Positions 13,022 to 58,229 of a stretch of 63,357 nt of DNA are shown here, piece after piece; position 1 is the stretch's first letter; each line of letters begins with the position of its first letter. Location: positions 5,332,644 to 5,396,000 of the forward strand of contig CM068771.1 in the NCBI GenBank assembly GCA_035084275.1, read 5' to 3'. The position numbers and the translations under genes are program-made. This stretch comes from Hydrolagus colliei (Eukaryota). The notes under the pieces are model-generated. The model was not told the origin of the DNA, did not search any database, and saw nothing but the letters and a program-made list of their open reading frames with translations.

Positions 13022-14351
13022 CTGAGAGAGAGAGAGAGGGGAGAGAGAGAGAGAGAGAGAGAGAGTCAGAGAGAATAATATTCATAATAATAATAATAAT
13101 CCTTGCATTTGATGTGAGAGAGAGAGAGTCAGAGAGAATAATATCCATAATAATAATAATAATCCTTGCGTTTGATGTGGCGCTTTTCACATCTTATCGA
13201 CGTCTCAAAGCGCTTCACAGACTAGACTGTCAAGTGAAGTGACTGTATGTTTTGTGGGCGAAACGCGGCAGCCGATTGCGCACAGCGGCGTGTGTGTGTG
13301 TGTGTGTGTGTGTGTCCCCCCCCCCCCANNNNNNNNNNNNNNNNNNNNNNNNNNNNNNNNNNNNNNNNNNNNNNNNNNNNNNNNNNNNNNNNNNNNNNNN
13401 NNNNNNNNNNNNNNNNNNNNNNNNNNNNNNNNNNNNNNNNNNNNNNNNNNNNNNNNNNNNNNNNNNNNNNNNNNNNNNNNNNNNNNNNNNNNNNNNNNNN
13501 NNNNNNNNNNNNNNNNNNNNNNNNNNNNTGTGTTTTACATGAATAACCTGATCTCTTTGTGAGTTATTCCACGACACCTCCGCCCGCCCCACTCAGTGGT
13601 TAGAGCCACTTACGTAAGATCTGTGTTCGAATCCAGGCAGGTCAGGGGGACGTCTCTCCGATGTGGACAGTCACTGCTTCAGACCCGAGCTGGGGACGGA
13701 GGTGGGGAGGGAGGGAAGGTGGGGGGGGAGGGATTAGGAGTTGCCGATGGGACCATCGAAGAGGAGAGTCTTGAGGTGGAACATGAAGGAGGCCTAGGGA
13801 GGGGGGGGGAGTGGGGGGGGGGGTGGGGGGCGAAGGCAGCTGTAGTCCTGGAGTCGAGGGTAGAGGGCAGAGAGAGAGAGTTGGGTGTCATCCGCATACA
13901 CACCGAATAATAAAATAATAATTCCCTCCAAAAAAACACAATCATAAAAATTGGTCATTTTCAACCCATGGCTGTGCGTATGGGGGAGACGCTGCTGTGC
14001 GCAATCGGCTGCCGCGTTTCGCCCACAAATATATACAGTCACTTCACTTTACAGTGTATTCCGTGAAGCGCTTTGAGACGTCGATCAGATGTGAAAAACG
14101 CTGTATCAAATGCAAGGATTATTATTATTCTTTGTGGTAGTTAACCCCACGTCTGCCAAGTGGGAGCACTGTGAACGTCGAAAAGTAAGGGGGGCTCGAG
14201 GATAGAGCCCTGGGGGGGGGGGGGGGGGGAAGCCACAGGTGAGGTGAGGGTGCGGGGGCCTGAAGACAGAAGTGTAGACGATGTGCTCAGGCTCTGTGTT
14301 ATTGTAAAGCTGTTTCGTTGAGTAACCCCCCTCTCTGTTTACTCCGCGCAG

Positions 14352-19591: not shown

Positions 19592-21539
19592 TATTACAAA
19601 TGAACTACAGTCAACGTTCACAGTGATATTCACAAGACGTTCCTCCTGATGTGAAAGGCGCTCTATCAACGGAGTTTTGTTGCTTTGGAAAATAAGCCTG
19701 AAAATCACTTTTACAAACTTTTCTACAACCACCGCGCGTATTTTTTCTTTCTCTTTGTGCTTTGATAAGCCTTCAACTCGTCGTTTCACTCCCGCGGCAA
19801 TGCTCAGAACGAGAAGGCAGAGGACAGAGTGTGCCGCCGAAGAGTTAGGGCTCGAAAGACGGGAGGGAGCGAGCTGGAGGGAGTCTGGGGATGGAATTCC
19901 AGAGAGCAGGGGGCAAAATAGCGATGGTGGGGGCAGATGGGGTGTGGGGGACATGAAGCAAGTCGATGTTTGCTGGGCAAAACACCAGCTTTTGGACTTG
20001 CTGTGGAGTCCTGTAGCTCAGTGGTTATAGCGCTCGCCTTGGGTTCAAGTTCAGTCAGGGCAAAATCTTGCAAGTTTCCTTACTCTATACGCCTGATAAT
20101 AATCCCTCAAGAAAAATAAATAATAATAAACGTTTCAATCCACGACTGTTTGAGGGACACTGGGTGGGGGGGGAGGGGGGCTAACGGATTGGCGAAGTGT
20201 CCATCGAAGAGGACAGTCTTGAGGCCAGACTTGAAGGAGGCCAGGGAGGGAGGGGAGGCGAGCGATGCGGAGGGACTGCGGGATGGAGTTCCAGAGTGAA
20301 TGAAAGGCTCGCCCGCCAATGGTTGGGTCGGGCGGACATGGAGGAGGCCAGAGCCTGCTGAGCGGAGGGAGGGGGCAGGCAGGTCGGTAAGGGGGATAGG
20401 AGGTCACGGATGTAGGGTGGGGTGAGGTTGTGGAGGGCTTTAAACAACACCATCATCCAGCACACAGCACTGTACCACAGGTGAATTCATTTGATTCTCG
20501 GGTGATTTTTTGAGGGTCAGCCAGTGATGTATTTAATTATTCCTTAAACATCAATGATATTCTTGATTTATATCAAATTGATTAATTTTATTGGAAGTCT
20601 GTATGTGACACATAGTTTAGCTGTTTCTATCTTTACTATAATCTCAAATCCAATCTCCCACTTTCTCCCCGTATCAACAACAACAAAATTACACGTGTAT
20701 AGCGCCCTTCATTAGCGCCTTGGGACGTCCTCCCGATGTGAAAGGCGCTATATAAATGTAAATTGTTGTTGTTGTTGTTCATGTCAGGAGGACATCACAA
20801 GTCACACTATAAAATTACACACTATAAAAGATTACACTAAAAACACCCATCGCTTATAGTGTAACTATAGACAGTGAGACAAGCTTACACACTGGACTGC
20901 GACAGGCCATCTTGTTTACAGATATCAAAGTGACTTTGGAGATTCCAGTGGGATTCTGACCAGAGCCCCCAACTGGGACACTGGGCATGGCCGTAGAGAA
21001 GAATGTCAGCCAATATCCCGTCTTGAATGTATGAGCTCACACACTGGATGGCAAGTCAGATTCTCTCAGCACAAGGTCAGGGACAAGTTGCTGATGAGGA
21101 CTAGTTGCAGATAAAAAAAGGTCTGTCACATTTTGCTCCCACTCACTTGGCATTGGGTTCCTCTGATGCTCTGAATGTTCTGTGAAGGCCTCCATGGTTT
21201 TGCTCCACCCTACCTGTGCAACCACCCAACCTGCCCACTCCCTCCATTCGGTGGTGTCCGGCTAGCTCCACCCAACCACCCACCCCATCATCAGGCACTT
21301 TGCCCTCCCAGACTTTGGAATTCCACCCCCAAACCCTCTGCCTCTTCCACTTCCTAGGCTCCTTCAAGTCCCGTCTCAAGATCCTCCTCTTCGATGGTCC
21401 CATTAGACCCCGCTCAGGCCCTCCCTTCACTTCCCGTCACAAACTCAGCTCAAAACTGGGTCAAAAAGCACAGAATCAAACCTTCGGCTCCATCCAAACC
21501 TCCTGGTTATAACAGTCGTACAGACGCAACCCTTCCTCA

Positions 21540-22081
21540 CTAAAACTTCACTGGGCAGAGTGTCAGAGGCCCAGAGTTTTTCACGTCAAAATTATCCCAG
21601 GGATTGAAGAGAGGATAGAGTTTCCCAGTGAAAGTGTCGGGGAAAGTGTGGAGATGAGACATGTGATCAGCGTCGTAAAATGACACCTGTCCCCCCTCAT
21701 AGTCCAGGTAAACTCCGACCTTCCCGGGTCTCGCTGTCAGGGGCAGGGGGGTGAGAGGTGACGTCACAGCCCAATAGACCCCGTCCACCTGCCTCACTGC
21801 CCAGAGCCCACCCTCTGGTGACAATGTGATTTGTTGATTCCTGTTGACAGACTCGCTGATGAGTCCCACAGTCCACCTTGTCTTGTTCCCCACCTGCACC
21901 TCCCAGTAATGTCTCCCTGATGTGAAGCCCTCAGATGCCAGGACCACAAAATATTCGCTAAACCTCTTTGGGTTGTCAGGGAGATGCTGCTGTTTGTATT
22001 TGTATCTCACGCTGGTCAGGTCTTTGGATAGGATGAGCCAGGCATTGGCTGTGTCAGGATCCAGAGTCAGAGAGGCTGGAG
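21540..22081 (-). CDS. BTN-A exon 7: B30.2 (PRY-SPRY) domain
   Basis: ctctctcag| acceptor in phase 1. Reads [13 protein letters not shown]...[12 protein letters not shown]...[17 protein letters not shown]...LYPLFNP...CPVKF*. Confidence 0.92.
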
Positions 22082-22174
22082 CTGAGAGAGAGAGAGAGAG
22101 AGAGAGAAATAACACTATGTGGGAGTGAGTAGGGGGCATGTGAGGGTATTGTGAGGTCTGGCCCGTCTCCACTG

Positions 22175-22633
22175 GCTCCCCATCCTCCAGAGGATCGAGT
22201 TTAAGATCCTCGTCCTCACCTACAAAGCCTTACACGGCCTTGCCCCATCCGACCTAACCGATCTACTCTCCCCCCACAAGCCCACCCGGACCCTCCGTTC
22301 AACAGGACTTGTCCTGCTCCAAGCCCCCGCCCGAACCGCCCCACCATCGGAGGCCGGGCCTTCAGTTTCTCCGCTCCCACCCTATGGAATGCCATCCCTC
22401 AATCCCTCCGTTTCGTCTCTTCCCTTTCCTCTTTCAAGGCCGATTTGAAGACTTTCCTCTTCGATCGTGCCTTTTGTTCCACCCCGAACTCTTTTACCTC
22501 CCCTTCGTGTTTCACCCCTTCCCAAACACTCCCCTCCCAGCTCGGGTCACACGCCTCCTGTGCAGCGCCTTGGGACGTCCTCCCGACGTGAAAGGCGCTT
22601 TATAAATGTAATTTGTTGTTGTTGTTGTTGTTG
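22175..22633 (+). mobile_element. L2 LINE 3' fragment
   Basis: [27 protein letters not shown] motif and an L2 tail. Nearly identical to 16957-17312 over about 350 bp. Confidence 0.85.
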
Positions 22634-22836
22634 ATTGTGAGGATGTATGTAGGGTGGGAGTATGTAGGGGTGTGTATGGATCGATGCATGTGGGGGGGGG
22701 GGGGGGGGGGGGAGCGATGCACGTGTGTGGGGGTAGGGCTGTGTGTGGGGGTGCACTGTGTGCGGTGGGGGGGTGCTGTGTAGGTGGGGGAGGCTGTGTG
22801 TGGGGCAGCTGTGTGTGTTGAGGGGGCTATGTGTGT

Positions 22837-22867
<31 letters not shown>

Positions 22868-23560
22868 GAGCTGTAGGTGTGGGGTTGCTGTGTGAGTAGG
22901 GGCGCTGTGTATGATTCTGTGAGGGTGTGGGGGAGGTGTTGAGGGTGCTGTGAGGGTGTGTGGGGCGGAACGTGACGATGTGCGTTTGCGGGCGGAGGGA
23001 AGGGAGTATGACGCAGGTGAGGTGATATAGTTGGAAACTTCAATATTTTTCCTGTGTTGTAGTATAATACTGTTGTTGTCGTCACATTGTACATAAACAG
23101 GGACGTGTGAATTGTCAGACAATCGGTGACTGAAATTCAACAGCAAATGACTCAAAAAACTGAAACCGAGAATCTTAAAAGCCAATCTGTTTTGCTGGCT
23201 GTTTTCCTCTCACCTTTTAATGAACTTTTCTGATATTTTCACAGTGACACTTCTACCTCATTGTCTCGTTTGGTCCCCAAAATATAGTCAATTCACTCTA
23301 CAGTATATTCTGTGAAGCGCTTTGAGACGTCGATAACACGTGAATAGAGCTGTGTCGCTGTATATAGCGATAATAATAGGATTATTATTTGGATTATTAT
23401 TTTACTGCGCCTTCCACAATTGCCGTGTCCACTCTACACATCACTGACCAATCTGTCACCGATCGCTGGAGTTCCGTTCACGGTGATCAGTCCCAGAGTT
23501 TAGCAACGAATGGGGCAGGTTTATGTGACTATTGCGTTCTCTGGTGACCGAGACTCTTAC

Positions 23561-23587
23561 CTGCACAGTTGGTAAGCTTTCTCCTGT
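23561..23587 (-). CDS. BTN-A exon 6: 27-bp exon
   Basis: ttcttgtttccag|ACAGGAGAAAGCTTACCAACTGTGCAG|gtaaga, phase 1-1. Confidence 0.85.
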
Positions 23588-23661
23588 CTGGAAACAAGAA
23601 GAAATGAGAGGTGATCAGGTCAGTGCCGGCTGGCAGTGTTTAAATTAATTCCATGTGACAT

Positions 23662-35888: not shown

Positions 35889-36530
35889 GTGCGTACTGAG
35901 GCGGGCTACGCTGGCCCGCTCTCCCCGCTCGTCACTCTCACTGACTCACTGCAGACAATAAAACAGCAGCTCACACTACCACAGCTTGGCGACATTATTT
36001 TACCTTTGGTCCTGGAAGTGTTGGGGGGCAGCCAAATTTTACTCGCATTCCGCAAAAAAGTGCCACATTTATTTCTTCGCGTTTAGTCAAACTCGCACTC
36101 GAGAAAGTCGCGTTCGGCAAGGGGTGACCGTATTGGGTTATTTGAGGGATTATTATCAGGCCTATAGAGTCACGAAATTTGCCCAAGGTTTCACCCTGCC
36201 TGGAATCGAACCCAGGTCTCCCACCTGTAAGGCGAGTGCTCTAACCACTGAGCTACAGGACTCCACAATAAATACACAGATACAATTTATTGTTGCAGTT
36301 TATGAAATATTAAGCGAGTGATGGGATTCCAGAACCCGTCAAACCCCCAAGATATACGGTGACCCCCAATCTTGCATTTCTGCTGATTTTTAAAAAATTC
36401 TCAATGAAAGTGAAACTAATCTTCTTCCTTGTTTCACCCACTCCACTTTAGGCAGTACTTTGAAACCACTTGTTCCTGACTGCAGAGAAAGGTAAGAGAG
36501 ATAGACTTTCCAGTCATTTTGTACAGTTGA
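35889..36530 (+). repeat. Source copy of the duplicated cassette; probable BTN-B promoter and first non-coding exon (donor at 36492)
   Basis: Matches 33014-33668. It contains an ISRE and the strong donor AAG|GTAAGAG upstream of the BTN-B leader exon acceptor at 38122. Confidence 0.7.
36406..36417 (+). promoter_or_regulatory. ISRE/IRF-binding motif GAAAGTGAAACT
   Basis: Canonical IRF consensus, about 75 bp upstream of the candidate exon-1 donor. Confidence 0.55.
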
Positions 36531-38132
36531 CCAGAGGAAAATTGAGGCTGGTTTACATTATAGCCTGAGTGTTTTAATGTTTTACTAACAGATCCTCTCT
36601 GTGTGTCAAGTTAATGCGTCCACAAGGTCAGATCTCTGTGTGTCTCTCTCTGTGGGAAATTCCCTGTTATATTTCTGCTTCTAAGTTTAAGAAAACTGTA
36701 AGGATTATTGTGAAGTTGCTTGTGATGTAGACTGTCAGCCTGGCTGCCCTGGAGAGTCACAGATCAACTGTGGCTCCCTCTGCTCTACACTCACTTTCCA
36801 ATAGCTCTGCCCTGAGCTGTAGGAAGGGAGGGGGAGAGAGAGGCAGAGGAGCAGAGAGAGGGAGTGAGAGGGAAAGAGGGGCTGACAGGGGGGGGAGGCA
36901 GAGAGGGGAGCTGAGAGAGGGAGATGAGCTGAGAGAGAGGGAAATATGGTCTGAGGCTGAGGGCTGAGGGAGGGAGATGGATGCTGCCTGACCTGCTGAG
37001 TTTTCCCAGCAACTTCTGTCTGTATAGTTGGTCTTTTCCTCCACAAAACACCTTTTTTGCTTCAACCAGCCGCTGATGTTGTGTTTCTCAGCCTCTGTGG
37101 GAAGAGATTCCTTTAGAACTGCCTTGAGGATCTGCTGTTGGCTATTCGCTGACTTACAATAATCCTTACATTTGACCCACAAGCCATCCCGCCCCAACCG
37201 CCGTCTCGGCCACCACGGACTTCAAGTAAACGCGGTTTCCTCTCTGCGACAACTTTGCCAACCGCGGCCGTGAATTTTGCGAATCCACGGGTTTTACCAC
37301 CAACACTAGTGTTTGGCGCTAGGACCCAATTGCATCAACCAACCACGCTGTCGCTTCTCTCTTAGGAATAAGGCAAATAACATGAATTTATTGTTTTTTT
37401 AATATTCTTTTTCATTGTGTTACTTGAACATTCGTTGTTTTTGTTGTTGAATCGTTAGAAATTTCGTCTTAACCTGTCACCACATGTGCGTTTGCCGGCT
37501 GCAGTGAATGACACAAGCGCAGTGTGGATTATTGGTTAAATCAGATTTGATACGAATGACACAGTTTATCTACGACTCAGACTTCACATAAGTCATTATC
37601 AAAGTCCTGTAGTAGTGGTTAGACAACCACAGGTTGGATTCCTGGGTGGGGAGAAACATTAGGTAAGTTTCTTTACTCCACACACCCCTGTTTACCAGCA
37701 GTTAGGAGCCCGGTTATTGGCCGATTGGCGGATTGCTTTTCTGCGGATCCTAATTCCTTCAAAAATAAAGAAATAATAAGAATGATTGTCACTCAATCTA
37801 CGACTGATTGTGGGACACTGCTGCGTGCAATTAGCTGCGGCGTTTCGCCCCCCAAAACACGCAGTCAATTTATATTACACAGAATAAAGCTTTGTGAAGC
37901 TCTGTCAGACATCTCAAAGAAATGATAATCCACCATATCAAATAATAATAAGCATTATTATTATTATTATGAATGTTATGGTCCTGATGGATATAACTGA
38001 TGTGAATTTTACTGTATGATTATAAATGTCACTGAAAGATGTTTAAATGTACTCAATATCACTCATATCTGCCTCTAATCACCTTTGCTGTGTTCTAACC
38101 AGTTCTAATTTACTTTATGAAGGTCTGGTGGA

Positions 38133-38190
38133 ATGGTCTGGAAATATCTTATTCGTATACTTTGCTTTGCACTTTGCCTCTCACAATCTG
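38133..38190 (+). CDS. BTN-B exon 1 (coding): signal peptide MVWKYLIRILCFALCLSQS
   Basis: 58 coding bp, |gtaaga phase-1 donor, acceptor 10 nt upstream of the ATG. The spliced CDS is 1401 bp (466 aa). Confidence 0.87.
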
Positions 38191-39525
38191 GTAAGAGAAA
38201 ATATTTTATCACGTAGATTTTCGTTTAAAAAACACAAGTTAAAAACACAAATTCCTTTCTGATTTTCTCCCTGTCTGGCGTCCTCTCATGGGGTATGTTT
38301 TCCCTTTATATCATTGTGAAGTCCTTAGCAATTCCTCCACCTCGCCCCCTCCCTAGCCTCCTTCAAGACCCTCCTCTTCGACCTTGCCATCAATCAGCCC
38401 TCTTCCTTCCACCCTCCCCGATCCTAACACCAGCTCGGGTCCAAAACACTGTCTATCCGGCACCTTGGGGCGTCCTCCCGACATGAAATACAAAATACAA
38501 CGAGCTATACAAATGTAATTTAGTTGTGGTTGTTTTTAGCCTCTCAAGTGAGAGGACCCAGGTTTGATTCCTGGGTTCGATTCCCAGATGGGGCAATCCA
38601 CACGCCTCTGTTTACCTTCTGCACGCAGTAAATAGTAACCCAGTTGTTAGTCGATTGGCGGGTAATAATCCCTTTTTAAAAAATCCCCCCCAAATAATAA
38701 TGACTCAATCCACGCCAGTTTGTGGAATTGGCTGCCACATTTCTCCTTCAAAACTTTACAGTACATACTGTACATCCTTTGAAGATCTTTGCGATGTATC
38801 CAGCCCGTGAAAAGCGCTATAACAAATGCAAATGACTTATCATGTGGTTAAGACTCAGAGTTTCACATAATACACTGTAAAGTGAAGCGACTGTATATTT
38901 ATTGAGCAATTCCAACGCTTGAGGTGCTAAGAGCGTTTGTGTCGATGGATCAAGGGCTTATCATGTCTTCTGGACGTCCCAAAGCGCTTCACAGAAGTGA
39001 ACTGACTGTATATTTTGCGGCAGCCAATTGCGCACAGCAGTTGCCCACAAACGGCGTGGATTGAAATAAGCAATTTATTGTTGTTTCATTTCTTGAGTGA
39101 TTATTATGACTCACGCAATGTCATTAGTCGCACTCTCACCTCCAAGTCAGAAGTTTGTGAACTGAACCCACAACCTTCATTCGATACACCGCCGTATCAC
39201 ATCAATGAGGTATCTCAAAACACTTTGCAGAATATTATTGTAAAATGAATTGACTGTATATTTAGTGGGAGAAACATGGCAGCCAATTGCGCACAGCTGT
39301 GTCCTACAGTCGTGGATTGAGTGACCAAATTATCAGTATTTATTTGTGAGGGAAAAGTGCCAATCGACTAACAACCGGGTTTGTACTCACTGCCAAGCAA
39401 ACAGAGGTGTATGGGGTAAGGAAAGTTGCCTAAAGTTTTGCCCTCTCGGTTATTATTATTATTGTTGGATGAGACAGTGTGTGATTCAGAAAATCCTGAC
39501 TATTTCCGTTGTTTAATCCATTTAG

Positions 39526-39876
39526 ATGAGAAATTCACAGTCACAGGCCCCGCTCAGCCTGTCCAAGGCTTTGTTGGCTCGGACGTTGTCATGGACTGTA
39601 AGTGTTCCGTGGGGTTACCACTGCAGAGAGTGGAGGTGAGATGGTTCAGAACAAACTTTGCCAGCCCTGTGCACCTCTTCCAAGACGGACACACTAATAC
39701 AATCAAACAAGATATAACCTACACGGGCAGAACACAACTGTTTACAGAGGAGTTTATCAACGGCAATATGTCTCTCAAACTCAAAGACTTGAGGCGGTCA
39801 GATACAGGAGAGTACACCTGTTTCATCGAGGACCAGCCATCGCATGAAGAGACAAAAGTAGAATTACAAGTCCAGG
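39526..39876 (+). CDS. BTN-B exon 2: IgV domain
   Basis: ccatttag| and |gtaggt, 351 bp. Reads DEKFTVTGPAQPV...DCKC...EVRWFR...PVHLF...GNMSLKL...DTGEYTCF. Confidence 0.93.
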
Positions 39877-40636
39877 GTAGGTAACATTATGGAGTCCCGT
39901 AGCTCAGTGGTTAGAGCTCCCGTCTCACAAGTGGGAGGACCTGGGTTTCGATTCTTGGGAAGCACAAAATGTTCGGTATGTTTCCTTACTCCTTATTCGA
40001 TTGGCAGATCACTTTCCAGGCGGTAAAGTGTGCACTTGGCTGCTGCATGTTGCCCCGAAAATGTACAGTGAATTCAGTATATTTACTGTATATTCTTTGA
40101 AGCGCTTTGAGACGTCTCGAGACACAGAAGACATAACAAAGCGCTATCTCAAATGCAAGGATTATTATTAATGTAATTGAAAGGGTTGAATTCCATCTTC
40201 AGACTGTATAAGAAACATGTTAGGTTACATACCCTGGACTTGAAACGCACATGTTAAGTGGGATTTTGATAAGAGTACATAACTGTTTCCTTTGATGGGT
40301 CGGTCAGTATCTAGAGGACACAGATTGAAGATAATTTGTAAGGGAACCAGTAATTCTTTCAAGAACAAGTTAGATAGATTTCTGTTAGCAAACAATATCT
40401 CGGAATACCACATATCAAGCGAGTGCCAGGATGGTGGAAGGTGAACCGGACAGACCTTGGTCTTCTTACGTCAGCAAGTTCTTAGTTCAAAAGTTGCTGT
40501 TGTTGTTTTTCGCTGCTGTTTACAAATGTACACACGCCTCCTGTGCAGCGCCTTGGGACGTCCTCCCGACGTGAAAGGCACTCTATAAATGTAATTTGTT
40601 GTTGTTGTTCACGTGGTGTTCCCTCTGTGCACCCAG

Positions 40637-40915
40637 TTTTTGGCAGTCAGCCTTGGATTCGCATGGAAGGATATGAAGGGAATGGGCTTAAACTGGTGTG
40701 CGAGTCTGAGGGATGGATTCCTGAGCCCGAGGTCTTGTGGGTGGATGGGAACGAGCGAAAACTGACAGCACAAACCAAATCAGAAACGTCTCCCGAAGGT
40801 TTCATCAAGGTCCAAACCTCCCTGATTGTCACAAAAGATTCCAGCAACAAGTTCAAGTGTCTGTTCATCAATAGTTTAACCAAGAAACAAACGGAAGGAA
40901 AAATCCAGATCGCAG
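40637..40915 (+). CDS. BTN-B exon 3: IgC domain
   Basis: gcacccag| and |gtcagt, 279 bp. Reads FGSQPWIRMEG...LVCESEGWIPEPEVLW...FKCLFINSL. Confidence 0.92.
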
Positions 40916-41415
40916 GTCAGTCCACATGTGATACTGGACCAGTTCAAGATCCTCATCCTCATCTTTAAAGCCCTCCACAGCCTCGCTCCTCCCTACCTCT
41001 GTAACCTGCAAAATGTCTGCTCCCTCAAGCCTGCTCGTGCCTGTTCCACGTCCCCCACCCTCCCTGCCTCACCAGCAGCAGTCACGCCTTCAGCCACTCT
41101 GTCTCCATCCTCTGGAAATCTAACCCAGAGCCTCTCGTTCCCTCCCTCGCCTCCTTCCAAGCACATGTCAAGCTCCTCCTCTTTGTTTTATTTTCATAAT
41201 CCCCTCAGAAATAAATGATAATTTGGTCACGACTGTTTGTGGGACCCTACTGGTCATAATTAGCTGCTGCGTTTTGCCTACAAAATACTTTATTGTCTAC
41301 TCTGTGCTGGTCTTCTACTCTGTGCAGCATCTTGAGACGTCTCGAAGACCTGATGAAACGCAATATCAAATGCAAGGATTCCAAAACTAATCCAGATTAT
41401 TATTTTTGCTTCCAG

Positions 41416-41532
41416 ATGATCTTTGCCCCAGTGTGTCTCTGCTGCTGGTCCTTAGTTTGTTATTCTTCATTTTCCTGGCCGCAATGGGTGCAATCTTGTT
41501 CTTCTTTTGGAAGAAATACAAGCAAACCGAAG
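41416..41532 (+). CDS. BTN-B exon 4: transmembrane exon
   Basis: ttgcttccag| and |gtacgt, 117 bp. Reads DDLCPSVSLLLVLSLLFFIFLAAMGAILFFFWKKYKQTE. Confidence 0.9.
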
Positions 41533-41636
41533 GTACGTTCCAATCCGAATCCTGGAATCCCAACCATTCCGGGCAGATCCCTACCTCTGTGTTATTCCGG
41601 AAGCCCATTTTGGGATTCACACCTGCCTACAATTAC

Positions 41637-41975
41637 GAAGTCCCATAGTGCAGTGGTTAGAGTACTCGCCTCGCAAGCGGGAGGACCTGGGTTCGATTCC
41701 CAGGAAGGGCAACACCTTTAAGGGCAAGTTTCCTTACACCACACGCCTCCGTTTGCCTAATAGTAAGCAGAAACCCAATTATAAGTCAATTGGCGGATCA
41801 CTTTTCCCGAGGTAATAATCCCTTTACTAAATAAAATAATTAATTGGGACAATTGGCTGCCACTTTTCCTCCACAAAATGCAGTCAATTCATTTGGAAGA
41901 ATATCCTATGAAGCGTTTTGAGATGTCTCAATGATGTGATAAGGTGATGTTTCAAATGCAAGGATTATTATTGTT
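41637..41975 (+). mobile_element. tRNA-derived SINE (older, near full length)
   Basis: tRNA-like head with A/B boxes, a central conserved block and a GCAAGGATTATTATT tail. Confidence 0.75.
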
Positions 41976-42115
41976 CTATTAATGTGCCCATAATTATATT
42001 GTGGTTCTGTGTACAGTAGCTGGCTCCCAATTTACCAGCAGAGGATTTCACACATTGTAGTTGGAAATGGAAGCCATGTGATTAATACACATTTTACTTT
42101 CTTTTTACCCAACAG

Positions 42116-42133
42116 ATCTTAAAAAAGAACTCG
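42116..42133 (+). CDS. BTN-B exon 5: 18-bp heptad micro-exon
   Basis: ttttacccaacag|ATCTTAAAAAAGAACTCG|gtaagt, phase 1-1 (DLKKEL). Confidence 0.85.
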
Positions 42134-42932
42134 GTAAGTTACAATAACAAAATTACATTTGGATGGCGCCTTTCACATCAGTTGGACGTACCAAGGCGCT
42201 GGAGGGTCAATGTTTCAGACCTGAGCTGGGGTCAGGATCGGGGAGGGGTGGAGGGAAAGGAGGGCCCGATGGGACCATTGGGGGCTGCAAGCTCCTGTCA
42301 CACATACAATGTCGCCTGATTTACCAGCATGTCTGTATCAGTCTCTACCTCTGAGGCTCTGATCAGTCTCTGCCTCTCAATCTCTACTCTCATGGTATAG
42401 TTTAGTGGTTAGATCACTGATCTCGCAAGCTAGATTCCTGGGCAGGGCACAACATCAGGCAGATTTCCTTATTCCGCATGACTCTGTTTACCAACAGTAA
42501 GTAGGAACCCGTTTGTTAGTCAGTTGGCAAGGATAATTATCCCTTAAAAAAACCAATAATAATAATTTTGGTCACTCAATTTATGACTGTTTGTGGGACA
42601 CAGCTGTGCGCAATTTGCAGTCACATTTTGCATAAAATATATGGTCAATTCACTTGTAAATACATTCTATGAACCGCTTTGAAGTCTTTGGAAGACATGT
42701 TAAGGCGCCATATCATAAGAGCATAAGAAGTAGGAGCAGATTCAGCCCATCGAGCCTGTCCCGCCATTCAATCATGGCTTCCTGCATAATCCCCATATCC
42801 CTTAAAACACTTAATAAATGAGAAATCTATCAGTCGCTACAATTCGGGAATATTACTATAATTATTATTATCTGCCTTCTTATTAGTCACCACCAAAGCC
42901 CTTATTGGCTGTTTGTTTGACTTTTGTTACAG

Positions 42933-42959
42933 AGTCGGAAAGGATGTTTGTCTATGCAG
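42933..42959 (+). CDS. BTN-B exon 6: 27-bp exon
   Basis: ttttgttacag|AGTCGGAAAGGATGTTTGTCTATGCAG|gtaaga, phase 1-1 (ESERMFVYA). Confidence 0.87.
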
Positions 42960-43564
42960 GTAAGAGACCTTTTACCTCAAACAAAATCACTGCAGCCTAA
43001 TTACAGTAATACCTCTCCTTCCGTTAAACTCCATTTGCTACAGCTCAGCCCATGTGCTTGAATCCGTCCTTGTCTTGTTTGCTGTCTTGTGCGCCGTTTG
43101 CAAACAACACCCCCCTCCCCATCTTAGCGTGTGAGCCTGGCTCAGTGTCGGCCTCTTGAATCAGACGGTTATGAGGTCAAGGCTCCACGACGGGACTTGG
43201 GATCACAGTCTAAACTGCTCCAGTGCAGCACTGGGTGGGGGGTGATGGATTGTCGGAGACACCGTCCTTTGGATGAAACATTAAACCGAGATCCCGTCTG
43301 CCTGTCCAGGTAGATGTTAAAGATCTCCCGCGGCGCTATTCAAAAAGAGAAGGGAGTTTCTCTCTCTCCTGGTGTCCTGGCAGACCATCCAGTCGCCTTG
43401 AGATAAAGGACGCCTTTTGATCACCTTTTGTCCTGTGAGATTGGATTCAGAATGAATGAAGGAAAGAAAAAATAAATGGGTCACTCAACTCAATCCACCA
43501 GTGTTTGAGGAGGGTCTTCTGTGAATCCATTTGAGGCGTCTCGAAGACATGGAGATATTATTGT

Positions 43565-43905
43565 GGAGCTCCTGTGGCTCAGTGGTTAGAGCACTTGTCT
43601 TGCAAGCTGGGGAGACCAAGCTGGGGAGACCTGTGTTCGAATCCAGGCAGGTCAGGACGAAACCTTGGGCAAGTTTCCTTACTCCACACGCCTAATAATA
43701 ATCCGTCAAACAAAAACCACAATAATAAAATTGGTCATTTCAATCCACGGCTGTTTGTGGGGGACGCTGCTGTGCGCAATTGGCTGCCGCGAATCGCCCA
43801 CAAACATATACAGTCACTTCACTTTACAGTATATTCTGTGAAGCGCTTTGGGACGTTGATAAGATGTGAAAAGCACAATATCAAATGCAAGGATTATTAT
43901 TTATT
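43565..43905 (+). mobile_element. Full-length tRNA-derived SINE (best-preserved copy, about 340 bp)
   Basis: A box TGGCTCAGTGG, B box GTTCGAATCC, the body, the tail GTGAAGCGCTTTG..GATGTGAAAAGC..AAATGCAAG and an (ATT)n end. Confidence 0.88.
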
Positions 43906-44121
43906 ATATAATTTTGATTATTCAAAGCGCTTCACAGAATACACTGTAAAGTGTAGTGACTGTATATTTTGTAGACGAAACGCAGCAGTCAACCCAGCAG
44001 TGCCCCACAAACAGTTGTGCATTTAGTGACCAATTTCTTGTGTATAATGGATTATGCATTAGGTATTTTTTTAAATTTAATAATAATTATTGTCAAATTA
44101 ATGATGTGATTTTGGCTCTAG

Positions 44122-44672
44122 TTAAAGTCAGACTGGATCCTGACACGGCCCATAACAAGCTTGTGGTGTCTGAGGACCTGACCAGCGTTTCAGCCGGAGA
44201 GAAAGATCAGCTGCTCCCTTACTCCCCGAAGAGGTTTAGTTACTGGGCCAGTGTCGTGGGATCTGAGAGCTTCACATCAGGGAAGCGTTACTGGGAGGTG
44301 CAGGTGGGCAGCAAGATTGAGTGGAGCTTGGGGGTGGTCAGAGGGTCCATGGAGAGGACAGCGGAGGTCACACTATCACCAGGGAACGGAATCTGGACTG
44401 TGATCCTCAGAAACGGGAACAATTATTGGGCCCGTGACAACCCCTGGATCCGCCTGACCGTGGAGGTGAAGCCCAGGAAGGTGGGAGTGCTCCTGGACTA
44501 CGAGGGAGGGAAGGTGTCGTTCTACAACGCTGACAACATGTCTCATCTCCACACTTTCACTGATTCCTTCACAGAGGCAATCTACCCTTATTTCTGCCCC
44601 TGGTTTCTTGACGGTGGGAGAAACTCCGAACCGCTGGTAATCTGTCCGGTTGAGAGTAAACTGAGAGCTTAA
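44122..44672 (+). CDS. BTN-B exon 7: B30.2 (PRY-SPRY) domain
   Basis: tttggctctag| acceptor in phase 1. Reads VKVRLDPDTAH...FTSGKRYWEVQV...VGVLLDYEGGKVSFYNA...IYPYFCP...KLRA*. Confidence 0.93.
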
Positions 44673-47752: not shown

Positions 47753-47974
47753 ACAAATCTATATGATTTAAAAAAGGACATACTTGCCTTAGAAGGAGTG
47801 GGGTGATTAAGTGGGGGAGCAGGAAGTGGCTATATCCTGTGTAGGATGGGAAGGGCTAGAGGGACCACAACCAATGAGATTCAAGTTAGTCGGTAGTCGC
47901 CGCTCTTAAAAGCTCAGAATGTGGTTGACTTGTCAGACACGGCCGATTGCAGTCTCTGTGCTGGGTCTTGAGGT

Positions 47975-50035
47975 GTGTGTCTCTTGTGTGCTCGTGTGTC
48001 GGTGTGTGCTCGTGTGTCGGTGTGTGCTCGTGTGTCGGTGTGTGCTCGTGTGTCGGTGTGTGCTCGTGTGTCGGTGTGTGCTCGTGTGTCGGTGTGTGCT
48101 CGTGTGTCGGTGTGTGCTCGTGTGTCGGTGTGTGCTCGTGTGTCGGTGTGTGCTCGTGTGTCGGTGTGTGCTCGTGTGTCGGTGTGTGCTTGTGTGTCGG
48201 TGTGTGTTCGTCTGTCGGTGTGTGTGCTGGTGTCGGTGTGTGTTCGTGTGTCGGTGTGTGTTGGTGTCGGTGTGTGTGCTGGTGTCGGTGTGTGCTGGTG
48301 TCGGTGTGTGTTCGTGTGTCGGTGTGTGTCGGTGTGTGCTGGTGTCGGTGTGTGCTGGTGTGTCGGTGTGTGCTGGTGTGTCGGTGTGTGCTCGTGTGTC
48401 GGTGTGTGCTGGTGTCGGTGTGTCGGTGTGTGCTCGTGTGTCGGTGTGTGCTTGTGTGTCGGTGTGTGTTCGTCTGTCGGTGTGTGTGCTGGTGTCGGTG
48501 TGTGTTCGTGTGTCGGTGTGTGTTGGTGTCGGTGTGTGTGCTGGTGTCGGTGTGTGTTCGTGTGTCGGTGTGTGCTGGTGTCGGTGTGTGCTGGTGTGTC
48601 GGTGTGTGCTGGTGTGTCGGTGTGTGCTCGTGTGTCGGTGTGTGCTGGTGTCGGTGTGTGCTCGTGTGTCGGTGTGTGCTGGTGTCGGTGTGTGCTGGTG
48701 TCGGTGTGTCGGTGTGTGCTCGTGTGTCGGTGTGTGTTGGTGTCGGTGTGTGTTCGTGTGTCGGTGTGTGTTCGTGTCGGTGTCGGTGTGTTGGTGTCGG
48801 TGTGTGTTGGTGTCGGTGTGTGTTCGTGTGTCGGTGTGTGTTCGTGTGTCGGTGTGTGTTGGTGTCGGTGTGTGTTGGTGTCGGTGTGTGTTCGTGTGTG
48901 TCCGTGTGTCGGTGTGTGTCGGTGTGTGTTCGTGTGTCGGTGTGTGTTCGTGTGTCAGTGTGTGTTGGTGTGTGTTCGTGTGTCGGTGTGTGTTCGTGTG
49001 TCGGTGTGTGTTCGTGTGTCGGTGTGTGTTGGTGTGTGTTCGTGTGTCGGTGTGTGTTCGTGTGTCGGTGTGTGTTGGTGTCGGTGTGTGTTGGTGTGTC
49101 GGTGTGTGTTGGTGTGTGTCGGTGTGTGTTCGTGTGTCGGTGTGTGCTGGTGTCGGTGTGTGCTGGTGTGTCGGTGTGTGCTGGTGTGTGTTGGTGTCGG
49201 TGTGTGTTGGTGTCGGTGTGTCCTCGTGTGTCGGTGTGTGCTGGTGTCGGTGTGTGCTGGTGTCGGTGTGTGCTGGTGTCGGTGTGTGTTCGTGTGTCGG
49301 TGTGTGCTGGTGTCGGTGTGTGTTCGTGTGTCGGTGTGTGTTGGTGTCGGTGTGTGTTCGTGTGTCGGTGTGTGTTGGTGTCGGTGTGTGTTCGTGTGTC
49401 GGTGTGTGTTCGTGTCGGTGTGTGTTCGTGTGTCGGTGTGTGTTCGTGTGTCGGTGTGTGTTGGTGTCGGTGTGTGTTGGTGTGTCGGTGTGTGTTGGTG
49501 TGTCGGTGTGTGTTGGTGTTGGTGTGTGTTCGTGTGTCGGTGTGTGTTGGTGTCGGTGTGTGTTGGTGTCGGTGTGTGTTCGTGTCGGTGTGTGTTGGTG
49601 TGTGTTCGTGTGTTGGTGTCGGTGTGTGTTCGTGTGTCGGTGTGTGTTCGTGTGTCGGTGTCAGTGTGTGTTTGTGTGTCGGTGTGTGTTGGTGTCGGTG
49701 TGTGTTCGTGTGTCAGTGTGTGTTGGTGTGTCGGTGTGTGTTCGTGTCGGTGTGTGTTCGTGTGTCGGTGTGTGTTCGTGTGTCGGTGTCGGTGTGTGTT
49801 GGTGTCAGTGTGTGTTTGTGTGTCGGTGTGTGTTGGTGTCGGTGTGTGTTCGTGTGTCAGTGTGTGTTGGTGTGTCGGTGTGTGTTCGTGTGTCGGTGTC
49901 GGTGTGTGTTGGTGTCAGTGTGTGTTTGTGTGTCGGTGTGTGTTGGTGTCGGTGTGTGTTCGTGTGTCAGTGTGTGTTGGTGTGTCGGTGTGTGTTGGTG
50001 TCGGTGTGTGTTCGTGTGTCGGTGTGTGTTGGTAT
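47975..50035. repeat. About 2-kb GT-rich minisatellite, 18-bp unit GTGTGTGCTCGTGTGTCG and variants
   Basis: Directly visible. It accounts for the three 700-aa C/V ORFs. Confidence 0.95.
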
Positions 50036-50998
50036 GTGTGTTGATGTCTGTGTGTGTGTAACTGAAAGCGCCGCCGCCCAGTTTTGGTGCCTGACTGACT
50101 TTCTGTCTGTTCTTCTCTCTCTCTCCCCTTTACTCTCTCTGTTCCTGACGCTGACCTCCAGTTAAGATCATTGTTTTTCAAGTTGAAGTCTCGCTTCAAT
50201 GTAACCTGACCTCCCCAGCTGCCTGGCCATTGCTGTAGGGCTGTGAGGCTGGCTTTAAACAGAGGATCAGCCACAAGTTACTCTGATAGACAGGGTTTGT
50301 ACCGTGTTATACCGTCCAGTTATAGCTTTATAATAAAGCTAGATCTGCACACTGGGCTTTGATTTAACACAACGTAAAACAGGGTATGCGGGAGTCTGAA
50401 GGGTATGATCCTGTGTGTGTGTGCCTGGCTGTGTGTTGGTATGTGTGTGTGTGGCTGGGCTGTGTGTGTGTGTGTGTGTTTGTTGGTGTGTGAGTGTTTG
50501 TTGGTGTGTGTATGTGTGGCTGTGCTGTGTTTGTTGGTGTGTGTGTGTGTGGCTGGGCTGTGTGTGTGTGTGTTGATGTGTGTAATTCTCACATGGTAGA
50601 GAGGAGAGAGTTTAATCTGTTTAGTTTGTGAGAGCCACGCCGCTCAGCCTTGTTTCCCTATGGTGCCTGATTCACTGATCTGTGATTTGTATTATGTTTC
50701 TTTCTGTCTGTCCTTCTCTTCCCTCCCCTTTACTCTCCCTGTTCTTCACACCAATTTCCTGCTCCATCTAACCTCCAGTTAAGAAAAGAAAGTTTTGTGA
50801 AAAAAGAAATTAATTTTTCAAGTTGAAGAAGTCTCGATTCAATGTAACCTGACCTCCCTCGCTGCCTGGCCAGCAATGTAGGGCTGTGAGGCTGGCTTTA
50901 AACAGAGGATCAGCCACAAGTTACTCTAACACGTTTCTCAACAGTCTGCAGCGTCTTCACTGGTCTGTGTGAGATTAGAGAAAAAATACTGTATACTG

Positions 50999-51715: not shown

Positions 51716-53095
51716 TAGGGAACGGCGATATATCGGTATATTGCTAAAACCCGATATGATTTTCATATCGATATGCCGATATAGACATTTTAATAATACC
51801 GATATATCGAAAAACGATATATCGAGGTAAAAAATCGGGATGTGAGCACAATCAACTACAAGACCCAGAATGCTCATCCCTATACACAATGCACAGACCG
51901 AGGTGCAAAGCCGCCATCTTGTATTCATAGTCCTCGAATACAATATACAGGTATGCAAGGGGTGGGGGGAGAGAGACGGCTGTGGGTTGGGGGGGTGAGG
52001 GGGAGAGAGACAGCTGGGGGGGGGGGGGGGGTGAGGGGGAGAGAGACGGCTGGGGGGGGGGAGAGGGGGAGAGAGACGGCTGGGGGGGGGAGAGGGGGAG
52101 AGAGACGGCTGGGGGGGGGGGGGGGGAGGAGAGGGGGAGAGACGGCTGGGGGGGGAGGAGAGGGGGAGAGAGACGGCTGGGGGGAGGAGGAGAGGGGGAG
52201 AGAGACGGCTGGGGGGAGGGGAAGATAGACGGCTGGGGGGGGGGGGGGAGATAGACGGCTGGTGGGGGGGAGAGGGGGAGAGAGACGGCTGGGGGGGGGG
52301 AGGAGAGGGGGAGAGAGACGGCTGGGGGGAGGTGGGGAGAGACGGCTGGGGGGGGAGGGGGAGAGAGATGGCTGGGGGGGAGAGGGGGAGAGAGATGGCT
52401 GGGGGGGAGAGGGGGAGAGAGACGGCTGGTGGGGGGGAGAGGGGGAGAGAGACGGCTGGGGGGGGGGAGGAGAGGGGGAGAGAGACGGCTGGGGGGAGGT
52501 GGGGAGAGACGGCTGGGGGGGGAGGGGGAGAGAGATGGCTGGGGGGGAGAGGGGGAGAGAGACAGCTGGGTGGGGGGGAGAGGGCGAGAGAGACGGCTGG
52601 GGGGGGGGAGGAGAGGGGGAGAGAGATGGCTGGGGGGAGGGATAGAGAGACGGCTGGGGGGAGAGAGACGGCCGGGGGGGAGAGAGACGGCCGGGGGGGG
52701 GGGGGGAGGGAGAAAGAGACGGCTGGGGGGGTGGTGGGGGAGAGACGACGGGGGGGGGGGGGGGGGGTGCGAGAGAGGGACGGAGGGGGGGAGGGGAGAG
52801 ACGGGGTGGATGTGATAATATACAGATAGATAGAGATGGGGGGGATGTGAGAGAGGAGAGAGGGAGAGAGACATAGAGAGACTCAGACAGAAAAACACAG
52901 AGATGGAGAGAGTGAGAGACACAGAGAGAGAAAGATATTTACCTCCTGAAAAGATAGGCCCCGAATGCACGCGCGCTCCGATGCACGCGCGCATGCGCAG
53001 TACAAAAAAACAGAAAATATCGGTATATCGGTATACCTCGATATGAGCCAACCGATATATCCATATCCGGAAAATTCCCATATCGCCGTTCCCTA
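51716..53095. mobile_element. Non-autonomous hAT element with internal G-rich minisatellite
   Basis: Perfect 16-bp TIR TAGGGAACGGCGATAT. Flanks are CAATACAC and CATTACAC (7/8 TSD match). Confidence 0.82.
51960..52805. repeat. G-rich minisatellite (GGGGAGAGAGACGGCTGGGG...)n
   Basis: Directly visible. Confidence 0.9.
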
Positions 53096-54784: not shown

Positions 54785-55654
54785 GTGTGGTCGGCGCCTT
54801 GGGATGTCCTCCCGATATGAAAGGCGCTATAGAAATGTAATTTTGTAGTTGTTGTTGCGTTCAGCCAGTCAGTCAATCTCATAATGAACACCATTTGACC
54901 TAGTCTGGTTCCTGAGCCAGGTGGGTCTGCAGCATTCCAGGGCATTCACTGCTGATGACAGCACAGCCCGGTCTGGCTCAATGGCACGACTTAATTAAGC
55001 AATTAAGGATTTTGTTGGCAATAGAAGAACAAGGTCCACACAGTTCGTCTTCCACCATCCAGGCAGTCACTGGGCAGGTCGTGTTCCAAACTATACACTG
55101 TATCCCAGATATTCAAGACTGTTTGTGGGTACACTGCTGTGCAGAATTGGTTGCCTCGTTTCGGTCACAAATATACAGTCAATTCACTTTACAGTACATT
55201 CTGTGAAGTGCTTTGAGACATCGATAAGATGGGAAAAACACTATTTCAAAGGCAAGCATTATTATTATTATTTCCTACCAGAAATGTATCTAATTTGTCC
55301 TTGAAATAAGTGACAATTTCTGCCTCCACCATCTCCCTATGGAGCCTGATCCATACATTTACTATTTGCTCACTGAAATAGTGTTTCCACAGATTTGTTT
55401 GGAATTTACCCCTTTCAATCGCAGGCCCTACCCTCTGCTTCTACTCTTCAGTACAAGATAAAACAGCTTGTTTTGTCAGTCACTGAAAGCAGAGAATCCT
55501 CCCATCAGCTCCTCTTACAAGCTAAAGGTCAAGTGACAGTGCAGTGACAGTGCTTAGTGAGCCCAGCCAGGGTTTGGCTTGTGTTTAAGCTATTGGCTCT
55601 GATTTGTTTTGCTGCTTGGATTCTCACTGTCTTCTATTCCTGTTTCACTTCCAG

Positions 55655-56008
55655 TTCTTCAACTCCTCCAACTATGCGTAATATTACCTCTGGCCTCTCC
55701 CAACACTATCATCAATGTCTCCATCAAGGCTGATGCCTCTTTCCGTGTCCTACGTCCCGTCAATCAAGACCATGAGGTTCACCTGGAAATGAAGTCTCCC
55801 TTTAACCTCAAAATAATGATATGGGGATCAGAGCAGTCAGATAGACTGTACTTTATTCACTCCAGCTACAGGGACAGAGTTCACTATCTTGGGGGTGATT
55901 TTATACAGTTGAGGAATGTAACTCTCAATGACAATGGGAGATATAAGATCATCATTAGAGATGTTCTAGGAAACACAGAGAGCCACTGGTTTGATCTGCA
56001 TGTATTTG
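55655..56008 (+). CDS. CD2/SLAM-family gene exon 2: rest of leader plus Cys-less IgV domain
   Basis: tcacttccag| and |gtgagt, 354 bp. Reads YRDRVHY...IQLRNVTLNDNGRYKI...FDLHVF. Absence of the V-domain disulfide is typical of the CD2/SLAM family. Confidence 0.85.
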
Positions 56009-57210: not shown

Positions 57211-57471
57211 ACCCCGTCTCCCAGCCGATGGTGGAGATGGCCAGTGATTGCTCAGCCAATGTCAGTCTGAGCTGCTCTGTCTCCAAAGGAACAAATGCCA
57301 CCATTTATTGGAGGAAGAGATTGGAGCCTAATGTGACGTTTGATGGGTATGTGCTGCTGCTGAATCCTGACAGTGTGGAGCAGGCAGCCGAGTATGAGTG
57401 TGTAGCAGAGAACCCGATCAGTCAGGAGATCAGTCGCCCACAACAGCCGTGTCACGAGAATCCAGGCCAAG
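57211..57471 (+). CDS. CD2/SLAM-family gene exon 3: IgC2 domain with four Cys
   Basis: tgtgtttcag| and |gtgaga, 261 bp. Reads DPVSQP...DC.ANVSLSCSV...IYW...YECVAENPISQE...PC. Confidence 0.9.
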
Positions 57472-58229
57472 GTGAGAGAGCCGTCAACATTACACACTGA
57501 ATTAGAGCAGCTCTGTCAGAATGGGCCTCACTATAGCATGGATTTGTTTCCCGTGATTCCATGCTTGTGCAACTGCTCACTTCCAGTTTGCCGGCCACCT
57601 TTCAGAAATGGCCAATGTTTAGTGATCAGGTCACCATCAACATTACTTCCTGCTCAGTCCATAAAATAGTCAAGTCCTGTTTTATGCGCAGGCTCCATGA
57701 ATTGACCACCGCCATCCTCGCTCGGCCCCACTGGCTCCCCATCTCCCCAGAGGATAGAGTTCCAAATCCTCATTCTTCCCTTCAAAGCCCTCCACAGCCT
57801 TGTACCTCATACCTTTATGACCTGCTGACCCCATATCAACCTGCCCACTCTATCCGGACCTCAGGAGGCTCTGGGTTGCTCTGCAGCCTGACCCACCATC
57901 AGCTGTCTGGCCATCAGCCTCTCTGCCTTCATACCCATTGGAACTCCATCCCACAGTTCCTTCACCCCGCTCCCTCCCTTGCCTCCTCCAGGGGCCATGT
58001 TGGGTCCCTTATCTTCGACCACATCATCAGACACCCTCCTGATCACAAACCCCAACTCAGGTCCAAATCCATGGAAACTTGCCTAAGGTTTCAATCCATC
58101 CGGGAGTTGAACCCAGGTCCTCCGACTTGCGCTCTAACCACGACACCACAGGATTCCCACCTCTGACAAACCGTTTCCGGTTACAAATCCTGGTTTACAA
58201 TAATAATCACTTTTTTTCCTTCCCCTCAG

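Follow-up and report, generated by a model that had tools for sequence, protein, structure and literature searches.

The DNA analysed here, called the window throughout, is a stretch of 63,357 nucleotides (nt) from the holocephalan Hydrolagus colliei (contig CM068771.1, positions 5,332,644 to 5,396,000), and it carries two butyrophilin-like genes that face away from each other, one on the forward strand (PLUS) and one on the reverse strand (MINUS). We regard it as probable that these are two intact, paralogous holocephalan members of the BTN/BTNL family, each with a promoter of its own, and that their head-to-head layout was made by an inversion. They would then be ordinary further members of a known family. 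A special meaning of the head-to-head layout is not supported, because of the inversion, the separate promoters and the assignment of the two genes to holocephalan-specific sublineages of unequal copy number.

In the account that we propose, each gene would encode a type-I membrane protein with a signal peptide, extracellular IgV and IgC domains and one transmembrane helix, followed on the cytoplasmic side by about 20 helical residues, encoded partly by exons of 18 and 27 nt, and then by an intracellular B30.2 (PRY/SPRY) domain. The two sublineages would have split within holocephalans before the window species and Callorhinchus milii diverged, and both would lie inside a larger cluster subject to gene gain and loss, where an inversion of about 13.6 kb would have flipped the minus-type gene with respect to the tandem layout of C. 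milii. Each gene would be driven by its own proximal promoter and not by a shared bidirectional element. By analogy with other members of the family, each protein would stand at the cell surface as a dimer and would serve there as a ligand or receptor in immune regulation, B30.2 linking it to cytoplasmic partners.

Gene structure and domain architecture

The genes were rebuilt from the sequence alone by locating the large Ig and B30.2 open frames and then reading the splice junctions; introns were scanned for phase-1 micro-exons between AG and GT, and a hydrophobic leader with a phase-1 end was sought further upstream. PLUS (38133-44672, forward strand) has exons of 58/351/279/117/18/27/551 nt and encodes 466 amino acids (aa), and MINUS (29803-21540, reverse strand) has exons of 58/348/282/114/18/27/542 nt and encodes 462 aa (Table 1). 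In both genes all introns have GT-AG ends and pyrimidine-rich acceptors, and all junctions are in phase 1. A distance of 8,330 nt separates the start codons, transcription runs outward, and the stretch 21540-44672 is bounded by the stop codons of MINUS and PLUS. No run of N lies in or near this region, the last one in the window stopping at 16908. The seven-exon plan, the open frames of 462 and 466 aa, the outward orientation and the distance of about 8 kb that an earlier note on this DNA had described were all reproduced exactly by this rebuild. PLUS and MINUS are genuine, intact butyrophilin-family genes of a cartilaginous fish, here a holocephalan, and they are divergent in sequence (47% protein identity) as well as in orientation.

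Pfam matches to V-set, C2-set_3, PRY and SPRY exceed the curated cut-offs in both proteins; for C2-set_3 (PF22705), the butyrophilin IgC domain, the scores are 74 and 70 bits in PLUS and MINUS respectively, with a cut-off of 27. The IgV cysteine pair, C44 and C118, is invariant in the family alignment, hydrophobic leaders are encoded by the 58-nt first exons of both genes, and the strongest 21-residue hydrophobic window of each protein marks a single transmembrane segment (Table 1). The best sequence matches in the PDB are full-length chains of BTN3A1/3A3, BTN2A1 and BTNL3/BTNL8, with expect values (E) of 1e-76 to 1e-81 for the human BTN3A1-BTN3A2/3A3 and BTN2A1 proteins that serve phosphoantigen sensing by Vgamma9Vdelta2 T cells. 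Both proteins also share their domain architecture and overall length with human BTNL3-BTNL8, the ligand that selects gut Vgamma4 T cells, whose chains measure 466 aa (BTNL3) and 500 aa (BTNL8), and they can be aligned over their whole length to the solved chains of PDB entry 22kk. Taken alone, the B30.2 domain resembles those of BTN3A1/3A3, pyrin and TRIM21 to about the same degree; for PLUS the PDB matches to them are at about 1e-43 to 1e-47.

The family characteristically has very short 'heptad' exons between its transmembrane exon and its B30.2 exon (PMC6790196, PMC4046983), as BTN3A does too (PMC6790196); those of PLUS and MINUS measure 18 and 27 nt, not 21 nt. The chicken BG region is similar in being a butyrophilin-related multigene region with two dynamic lineages and short exons for a cytoplasmic helix (PMC4046983), but BG proteins carry only one Ig domain, their long tails are encoded by 21-nt exons, and most of them lack B30.2. 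The suggestion of the earlier note that the 18- and 27-nt exons encode a juxtamembrane coil is plausible, in the form of a helix that continues from the membrane. In the AlphaFold2 (AF2) model of the C. milii plus ortholog, which is 75% identical to PLUS and has a mean predicted local distance difference test score of 91, one helix (242-286) comprises the transmembrane segment and about 20 cytoplasmic residues, among them the micro-exon-encoded ones, and leads directly into B30.2. The heptad register of the stretch is poor. From the transmembrane core to the LDPDTA motif it measures about 27-32 residues, similar to 32 in human BTNL8 and 34 in bat BTNL3; we therefore dropped the objection that its shortness would deprive it of significance. 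The BTN3A coiled coil, at about 40 residues (PMC10665462), is longer than the 20 or so cytoplasmic helical residues here.

A crude count of net charge over the 15 micro-exon-encoded residues gives -1 and -2 in the two plus-type proteins and +1 to +4 in most full-length minus-type models of both species; two Ensembl minus-type models with non-homologous segments give 0 and -1.

A role as phosphoantigen sensor of the BTN3A1 type was also considered. We take the basic pocket of BTN3A1 to consist of H351, H378, K393, R412, R418 and R469, a list said to be that of Sandstrom et al. in 2014. When the window B30.2 domains were aligned to BTN3A3, which has the BTN3A1 pocket except at position 351, this numbering landed on H or R at the five positions common to BTN3A3 and BTN3A1, K393 after a one-residue shift of register. 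None of the six residues is kept in either protein, the corresponding residues being W, S, T, W, W and C in PLUS and Y, T, T, W, L and N in MINUS, and a BTN3A1-type sensor is ruled out on this ground.

Counterparts in Callorhinchus milii

Butyrophilins are already known from cartilaginous fish, both annotated and published: they occur in all jawed vertebrates including C. milii, and they are class-specific with many lineage-specific duplications (PMC12841164). The PLUS and MINUS proteins themselves were absent from the protein collection that we searched. The top matches were all from C. milii, annotated 'butyrophilin subfamily 1 member A1(-like)', with a best E of 8e-242, far from anything that chance would produce. 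PLUS is 75% identical over its full length to XP_007910686.2 (P0001/P0121) and MINUS is 71% identical to XP_007905082.1 (P0007); in the crosswise comparisons, PLUS with P0007 and MINUS with P0001/P0121, identity is only about 47%.

Mapped back onto the C. milii genes, the RefSeq proteins gave seven exons in the arrangement of PLUS and MINUS, the 18- and 27-nt exons included and in matching positions, and the micro-exon-encoded residues of PLUS and MINUS align with these RefSeq proteins; this predicted exon plan of C. milii is the best support at hand for the micro-exons. P0121 (scaffold MU249860.1, 3856774-3862797), the ortholog of PLUS, has exons of 70/351/279/120/18/27/563 nt, and its introns, promoter and downstream Ig gene are collinear with those of PLUS. 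The C. milii minus-type genes (among them P0007, P0020, P0019 and P0009-P0011) are 64-71% identical to MINUS and form one well-supported clade with it; they share with MINUS the micro-exon residues, the basic RRK motif and the proximal promoter. They differ in that several copies are spread along both strands of the 4.1-Mb scaffold, with no one-to-one ortholog of MINUS among them. Collinear non-coding DNA of the two species is 67-87% identical, and synonymous divergence is about 0.3. These values point to a holocephalan other than C. milii and bear out the guess of a cartilaginous fish in the earlier note.

Phylogeny and copy number

Two trees were built with sequences from the best 120 matches of one search, a quick one with 61 proteins and a careful, bootstrapped one with 41, and they agree. 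All holocephalan sequences form one clade (support 100/98), in which PLUS pairs with P0121 (100/100) and MINUS falls among ten minus-type sequences (100/99). The cartilaginous-fish clade is supported at 99/92, and human BTNL8, bat BTNL3 and chimpanzee BTN3A2 occupy a separate tetrapod clade (100/99). This topology argues that the split into plus and minus types was a holocephalan-specific duplication, which would predate the separation of the window species from C. milii and postdate the separation of holocephalans from sharks and rays. The trees reveal no orthology of PLUS or MINUS to the partners of any mammalian heteromer pair, in keeping with the lineage-specific duplications already published for butyrophilins (PMC12841164). 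The earlier note had proposed an early version of the mammalian system, a claim that these results do not support, as the duplication appears to be holocephalan-specific and the mammalian BTNL3/8 and BTN3A proteins lie in their separate tetrapod clade; any heteromer would therefore be convergent.

Copy number is unequal, C. milii having about one plus-type gene and ten or more of the minus type. The plus type, which is conserved, appears to exist as a single copy; the minus type is multi-copy and evolves faster.

Layout and probable inversion

We compared the window with the C. milii locus of the PLUS ortholog on scaffold MU249860.1 (L002). PLUS is collinear with L002 from 484 nt upstream of its start, through exons and introns and into the 3' flank. 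Further downstream the collinearity extends to an Ig-domain gene (window 55585-59058, L002 22474-25171) at 70-87% identity, which strongly argues that PLUS and P0121 are positional orthologs. In C. milii, a minus-type gene lies directly upstream of the plus ortholog on the same strand, so that the two are in tandem and not head-to-head. Positions 113-4133 of L002, comprising the last introns, the B30.2 exon and the 3' flank of this upstream minus-type gene, correspond to window positions 25007-21405 in reverse, and L002 4337-4906 corresponds to 34980-35516 in the forward direction. The simplest reading of this arrangement would be an inversion of about 13.6 kb relative to C. milii, the inverted segment holding the whole MINUS gene and 5.2 kb of its upstream DNA. 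Since the genes are in tandem in C. milii and an inversion separates the two species, the head-to-head layout belongs to one lineage only and has not been conserved as a unit.

Plus-type and minus-type genes are nevertheless direct neighbours in both holocephalans, although their orientation differs. The minus type is multi-copy, and this adjacency could therefore be incidental. Members of the family are found at 0.73, 2.35, 3.67 and 3.86 Mb of the 4.1-Mb C. milii scaffold on both strands, and in such a large family some divergent neighbours are expected by chance.

Alternatively, either the window or the C. milii scaffold may be misassembled, in which case the head-to-head arrangement would be an artefact and the two species would in truth have one and the same layout. 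The region between the genes contains near-identical direct (97-100%) and inverted (91-97%) duplications that could mislead assemblers, and scaffold MU249860.1 is unplaced. However, no N runs occur at or near either inversion junction in either assembly, the breakpoints at 21405 and 34980 lie off the duplicated segments, and the collinear blocks on either side are long and clean, so we hold an artefact to be highly improbable. The inverted duplication 30329-30800 / 33676-34169 was considered as a breakpoint of the inversion itself and rejected on the position of those breakpoints.

Intergenic DNA and promoters

Interspersed repeats and direct and inverted duplications form a patchwork across the 8.3 kb that separate the start codons, and no CpG island was found there. 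The direct duplication (33014-33500 / 35889-36362) has copies 97-100% identical and 2.9 kb apart, and the copies of the inverted duplication are 91-97% identical and about 3 kb apart. These duplications, which lie off the inversion breakpoints, are signs of recent local rearrangement.

The DNA immediately upstream of each gene is conserved with C. milii genes of its own type (Table 1), and a comparison of the PLUS and MINUS upstream regions with each other found no in-register similarity. Each gene therefore appears to possess its own type-specific proximal promoter, carried along through the inversion, and this argues against a shared bidirectional control region. A bidirectional-promoter pair is usually defined by divergent starts within about 1 kb and one promoter. 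The start codons here are separated by more than eight times that distance, and the orientation is different in C. milii. A shared promoter was rejected on the lack of in-register upstream similarity and of a CpG island, and the description of the genes as a co-regulated divergent pair, made in the earlier note, gives way to one of two genes 8.3 kb apart, with repeats and duplications between them, conserved promoters of their own and a tandem layout in C. milii.

Selection and intactness

The ratios of non-synonymous to synonymous divergence (dN/dS) given here are pairwise estimates without a significance test. PLUS and its ortholog P0121 give a dN/dS of 0.40 at a synonymous divergence (dS) of 0.31, with 0.43 in IgV, 0.29 in IgC and 0.34 in B30.2. 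MINUS, compared at a similar synonymous distance with the C. milii minus-type gene P0020, gives 0.73 overall, with 0.97 in IgV, 0.49 in IgC, 0.73 in B30.2 and 1.14 in the transmembrane and juxtamembrane part. Overall values of 0.40 and 0.73 suggest that both genes are under purifying selection, and the higher figure for MINUS may reflect the fast evolution of an expanding immune gene lineage rather than decay.

Were PLUS alone functional, MINUS would be a redundant member of an array, drifting towards a pseudogene. Its high dN/dS values, overall and especially in IgV and the transmembrane and juxtamembrane part, agree with such a fate, and decay does occur in the minus-type lineage, as the truncated B30.2 relic at 62485-62734 indicates. 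Yet MINUS has a fully open frame of 462 codons and canonical sequences at all twelve splice sites; it retains the cysteines of its Ig domains and the core motifs of B30.2, dN/dS is below 1 in IgC and in B30.2, and the proximal promoter is conserved. At a dS of about 0.28 since the split, stops or frameshifts would be almost certain in a neutral sequence; the decay of MINUS strikes us as very unlikely, and two intact genes remain the preferred reading.

The B30.2 fragment on the reverse strand at 62485-62734 is the third butyrophilin sequence of the window. It contains the C-terminal 77 residues only, 77% identical to MINUS; the N-terminal half was not detectable before the window end, and a repeat-like open reading frame (ORF) adjoins it. 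It is likely to be a truncated relic, or an insertion-split exon, of another minus-type gene.

Comparison with known heteromers

A reading that takes up the earlier note would have PLUS and MINUS form an obligate heteromer, co-expressed from a shared region, that selects or activates gamma-delta T cells as an early or convergent equivalent of the mammalian pairs BTNL3-BTNL8, Btnl1-Btnl6 or BTN2A1-BTN3A1. Several points speak for it. Paralog heteromers are common among butyrophilins (PMC5798315, PMC10665462), and the human BTNL3 and BTNL8 genes are, like the pair discussed here, two neighbouring paralogs. Plus and minus genes adjoin each other in both holocephalans compared, and a single conserved plus type with an expanded minus type of fast IgV would fit an invariant and a variable chain. 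The micro-exon stretch is acidic in the plus type and basic in most minus-type models of both species, and it is about as long as its equivalent in human BTNL8 and bat BTNL3. In BTN3A, the charge of the juxtamembrane helix (KKK in BTN3A1, ETE in BTN3A2/3) can steer homodimer versus heterodimer pairing, opposite charges favouring BTN3A1-BTN3A2/3 heteromers (PMC10665462), and pairing needs the IgC domain as well (PMC5798315).

Set against these points, PLUS and MINUS are without orthology to any mammalian pair. BTNL3 and BTNL8 belong to the tetrapod clade, and their heteromer and its T-cell receptor (TCR) binding are demonstrated for the human pair, while those of PLUS and MINUS are hypothetical. 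The orientation of the holocephalan genes is not conserved, their promoters are separate and lie 8.3 kb apart, and copy numbers are unequal, with about one plus gene to at least ten minus genes in C. milii. One divergent neighbour pair is expected by chance in a large family spread over both strands. Head-to-head orientation is in any case no signature of known pairs, since human BTNL8 and BTNL3 are about 56 kb apart in the same orientation, such that a deletion between them gives an in-frame fusion (PMC3729544). The charge contrast is crude, and by the same juxtamembrane count it is missing between BTNL8 and BTNL3. Finally, butyrophilins persist in squamates that lack gamma-delta TCRs (PMC12841164), which weakens any automatic link to gamma-delta T cells. 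We consequently judge the obligate, co-expressed heteromer to be unlikely.

PLUS and MINUS may still form a heteromer as such, and the weak hints of it are a strong family precedent, conserved adjacency and the opposite juxtamembrane charges, which, as weak evidence, would fit charge-steered pairing. A bolder version would have holocephalans evolve a two-chain system of their own, in which the conserved, apparently single-copy plus chain pairs via complementary juxtamembrane charge with any of several fast-evolving minus chains, so that a set of different heteromers would serve as ligands of innate-like T cells, possibly of the gamma-delta kind, convergent with the mammalian BTNL system; we consider this a long shot.

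Other features of the window

The segment at 55585-59058 on the forward strand is collinear with the C. milii gene next downstream of the plus ortholog, a gene with a 271-aa product and a faint Ig_3 match. Within it, the ORF at 55609-56142 resembles an Ig V-type exon, without a Pfam match. On the reverse strand at about 4018-4373, an ORF with a RING-like Cys/His pattern has a weak likeness (29% identity) to a C. milii TRIM protein, 'zinc-binding protein A33-like', and scores 18 bits with Pfam zf-RING_UBOX, which is under the cut-off. Possibly a TRIM exon lies here beside the butyrophilin cluster. The ORFs at 31255-31527 (reverse) and 11407-11727 (forward), which resemble the C-terminal part of the ORF2 of a retrotransposon without long terminal repeats (non-LTR), have no Pfam match either. 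Pfam scans of these neighbouring ORFs, whether Ig-like, RING-like or retroelement-like, thus returned nothing above cut-off.

Long simple-sequence tracts at 47919-50165 and 51842-53081 are not genes: a GT-rich repeat translates into 700-aa 'CVCV' pseudo-ORFs in three frames, and a G/C-rich repeat into proline- and glycine-rich pseudo-ORFs. A family resembling short interspersed elements (SINE-like), of about 150-300 nt, occurs in introns and intergenic DNA (for example 13988-14132, 30125-30320, 43767-43907 and 55133-55272) and is common to the C. milii loci. Thirteen N blocks of 148-394 nt lie between 3117 and 16908, several of them (about 6.1-7.3, 8.2-8.6 and 9.5-9.9 kb) inside simple-sequence repeats with ERTNERT- and CVCV-type translations. 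These flanking repeats suggest gaps or masked repeats, and the idea that the N blocks hide exons was set aside.

Table 1. Positions in the window of the exons of PLUS and MINUS, their 5' flanks, and the intergenic and inverted segments (a slash marks the exon end in donor sites).
Feature	Positions	Strand	Evidence or remarks
PLUS proximal promoter / 5' flank	37649..38132	+	73% identity over 688 nt into exon 1 vs C. milii ortholog
PLUS exon 1, ATG + signal peptide	38133..38190	+	leader MVWKYLIRILCFALCLSQS, donor CTG/GTAAGA; collinear with C. milii P0121 exon 1
PLUS exon 2, IgV, 351 nt	39526..39876	+	Pfam V-set; 73% aa identity vs C. milii ortholog exon
PLUS exon 3, IgC, 279 nt	40637..40915	+	Pfam C2-set_3 E = 8.5e-21; 83% aa identity vs C. 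milii exon
PLUS exon 4, transmembrane + first cytoplasmic residues, 117 nt	41416..41532	+	hydrophobic window residues 238-258; splice sites
PLUS exon 5, 18-nt micro-exon DLKKEL	42116..42133	+	acceptor CTTTTTACCCAACAG, donor TCG/GTAAGT; C. milii counterpart L002:13986-14003
PLUS exon 6, 27-nt micro-exon ESERMFVYA	42933..42959	+	donor CAG/GTAAGA; C. milii counterpart L002:14598-14624
PLUS exon 7, B30.2 (PRY/SPRY) + stop, 551 nt	44122..44672	+	Pfam PRY, SPRY; PDB matches
MINUS proximal promoter / 5' flank	29804..30002	-	78% identity over 282 nt into exon 1 vs C. milii minus-type P0020
MINUS exon 1, ATG + signal peptide, 58 nt	29746..29803	-	leader MIWKPCIQVLWLALPLSLA, donor CTG/GTAAGG
MINUS exon 2, IgV, 348 nt	28163..28510	-	Pfam V-set; splice sites
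MINUS exon 3, IgC, 282 nt	26697..26978	-	Pfam C2-set_3 E = 1.6e-19
MINUS exon 4, transmembrane, 114 nt	25801..25914	-	splice sites; hydrophobic window residues 236-256
MINUS exon 5, 18-nt micro-exon TLQLRL	24819..24836	-	donor TGG/GTAAGC; residues kept in C. milii P0007, P0020; P0020 micro-exon at same place
MINUS exon 6, 27-nt micro-exon DRRKLTNCA	23561..23587	-	donor CAG/GTAAGA, 18/20 pyrimidine tract; kept in C. milii minus-type proteins
MINUS exon 7, B30.2 + stop, 542 nt	21540..22081	-	Pfam PRY, SPRY; 80% nt identity (exon + 3' flank) vs C. milii gene upstream of P0121, reversed
Region between start codons, 8.3 kb	29804..38132		patchwork of interspersed repeats, direct + inverted duplications
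Segment inverted vs C. milii, ~13.6 kb	21405..34980		whole MINUS gene + 5.2 kb of its upstream DNA

Discussion

Several points weigh against the account of two intact genes rearranged by an inversion. The transcription and micro-exon splicing of PLUS and MINUS rest on homology with the RefSeq models of C. milii, and their function as cell-surface dimers, though probable, is drawn from analogy with family members. The minus-type gene upstream of the plus ortholog in C. milii falls within the compared locus with its 3' part only. 'Inverted' is meant relative to C. milii, and either orientation may be ancestral. The dN/dS near 1 in the IgV domain of MINUS could mean relaxation and not function.

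Two well-defined members of the butyrophilin family are added here from a second holocephalan, and the division into one conserved sublineage and one that has expanded, specific to holocephalans, is documented. The orientation of genes in a butyrophilin cluster varies between species, which advises caution when function is inferred from a divergent layout in a fast-rearranging immune cluster. If PLUS and MINUS did pair, heteromers of butyrophilins would have had more than one origin among jawed vertebrates, and holocephalans would offer another, very distant system in which to study the influence of such ligands on T-cell compartments.

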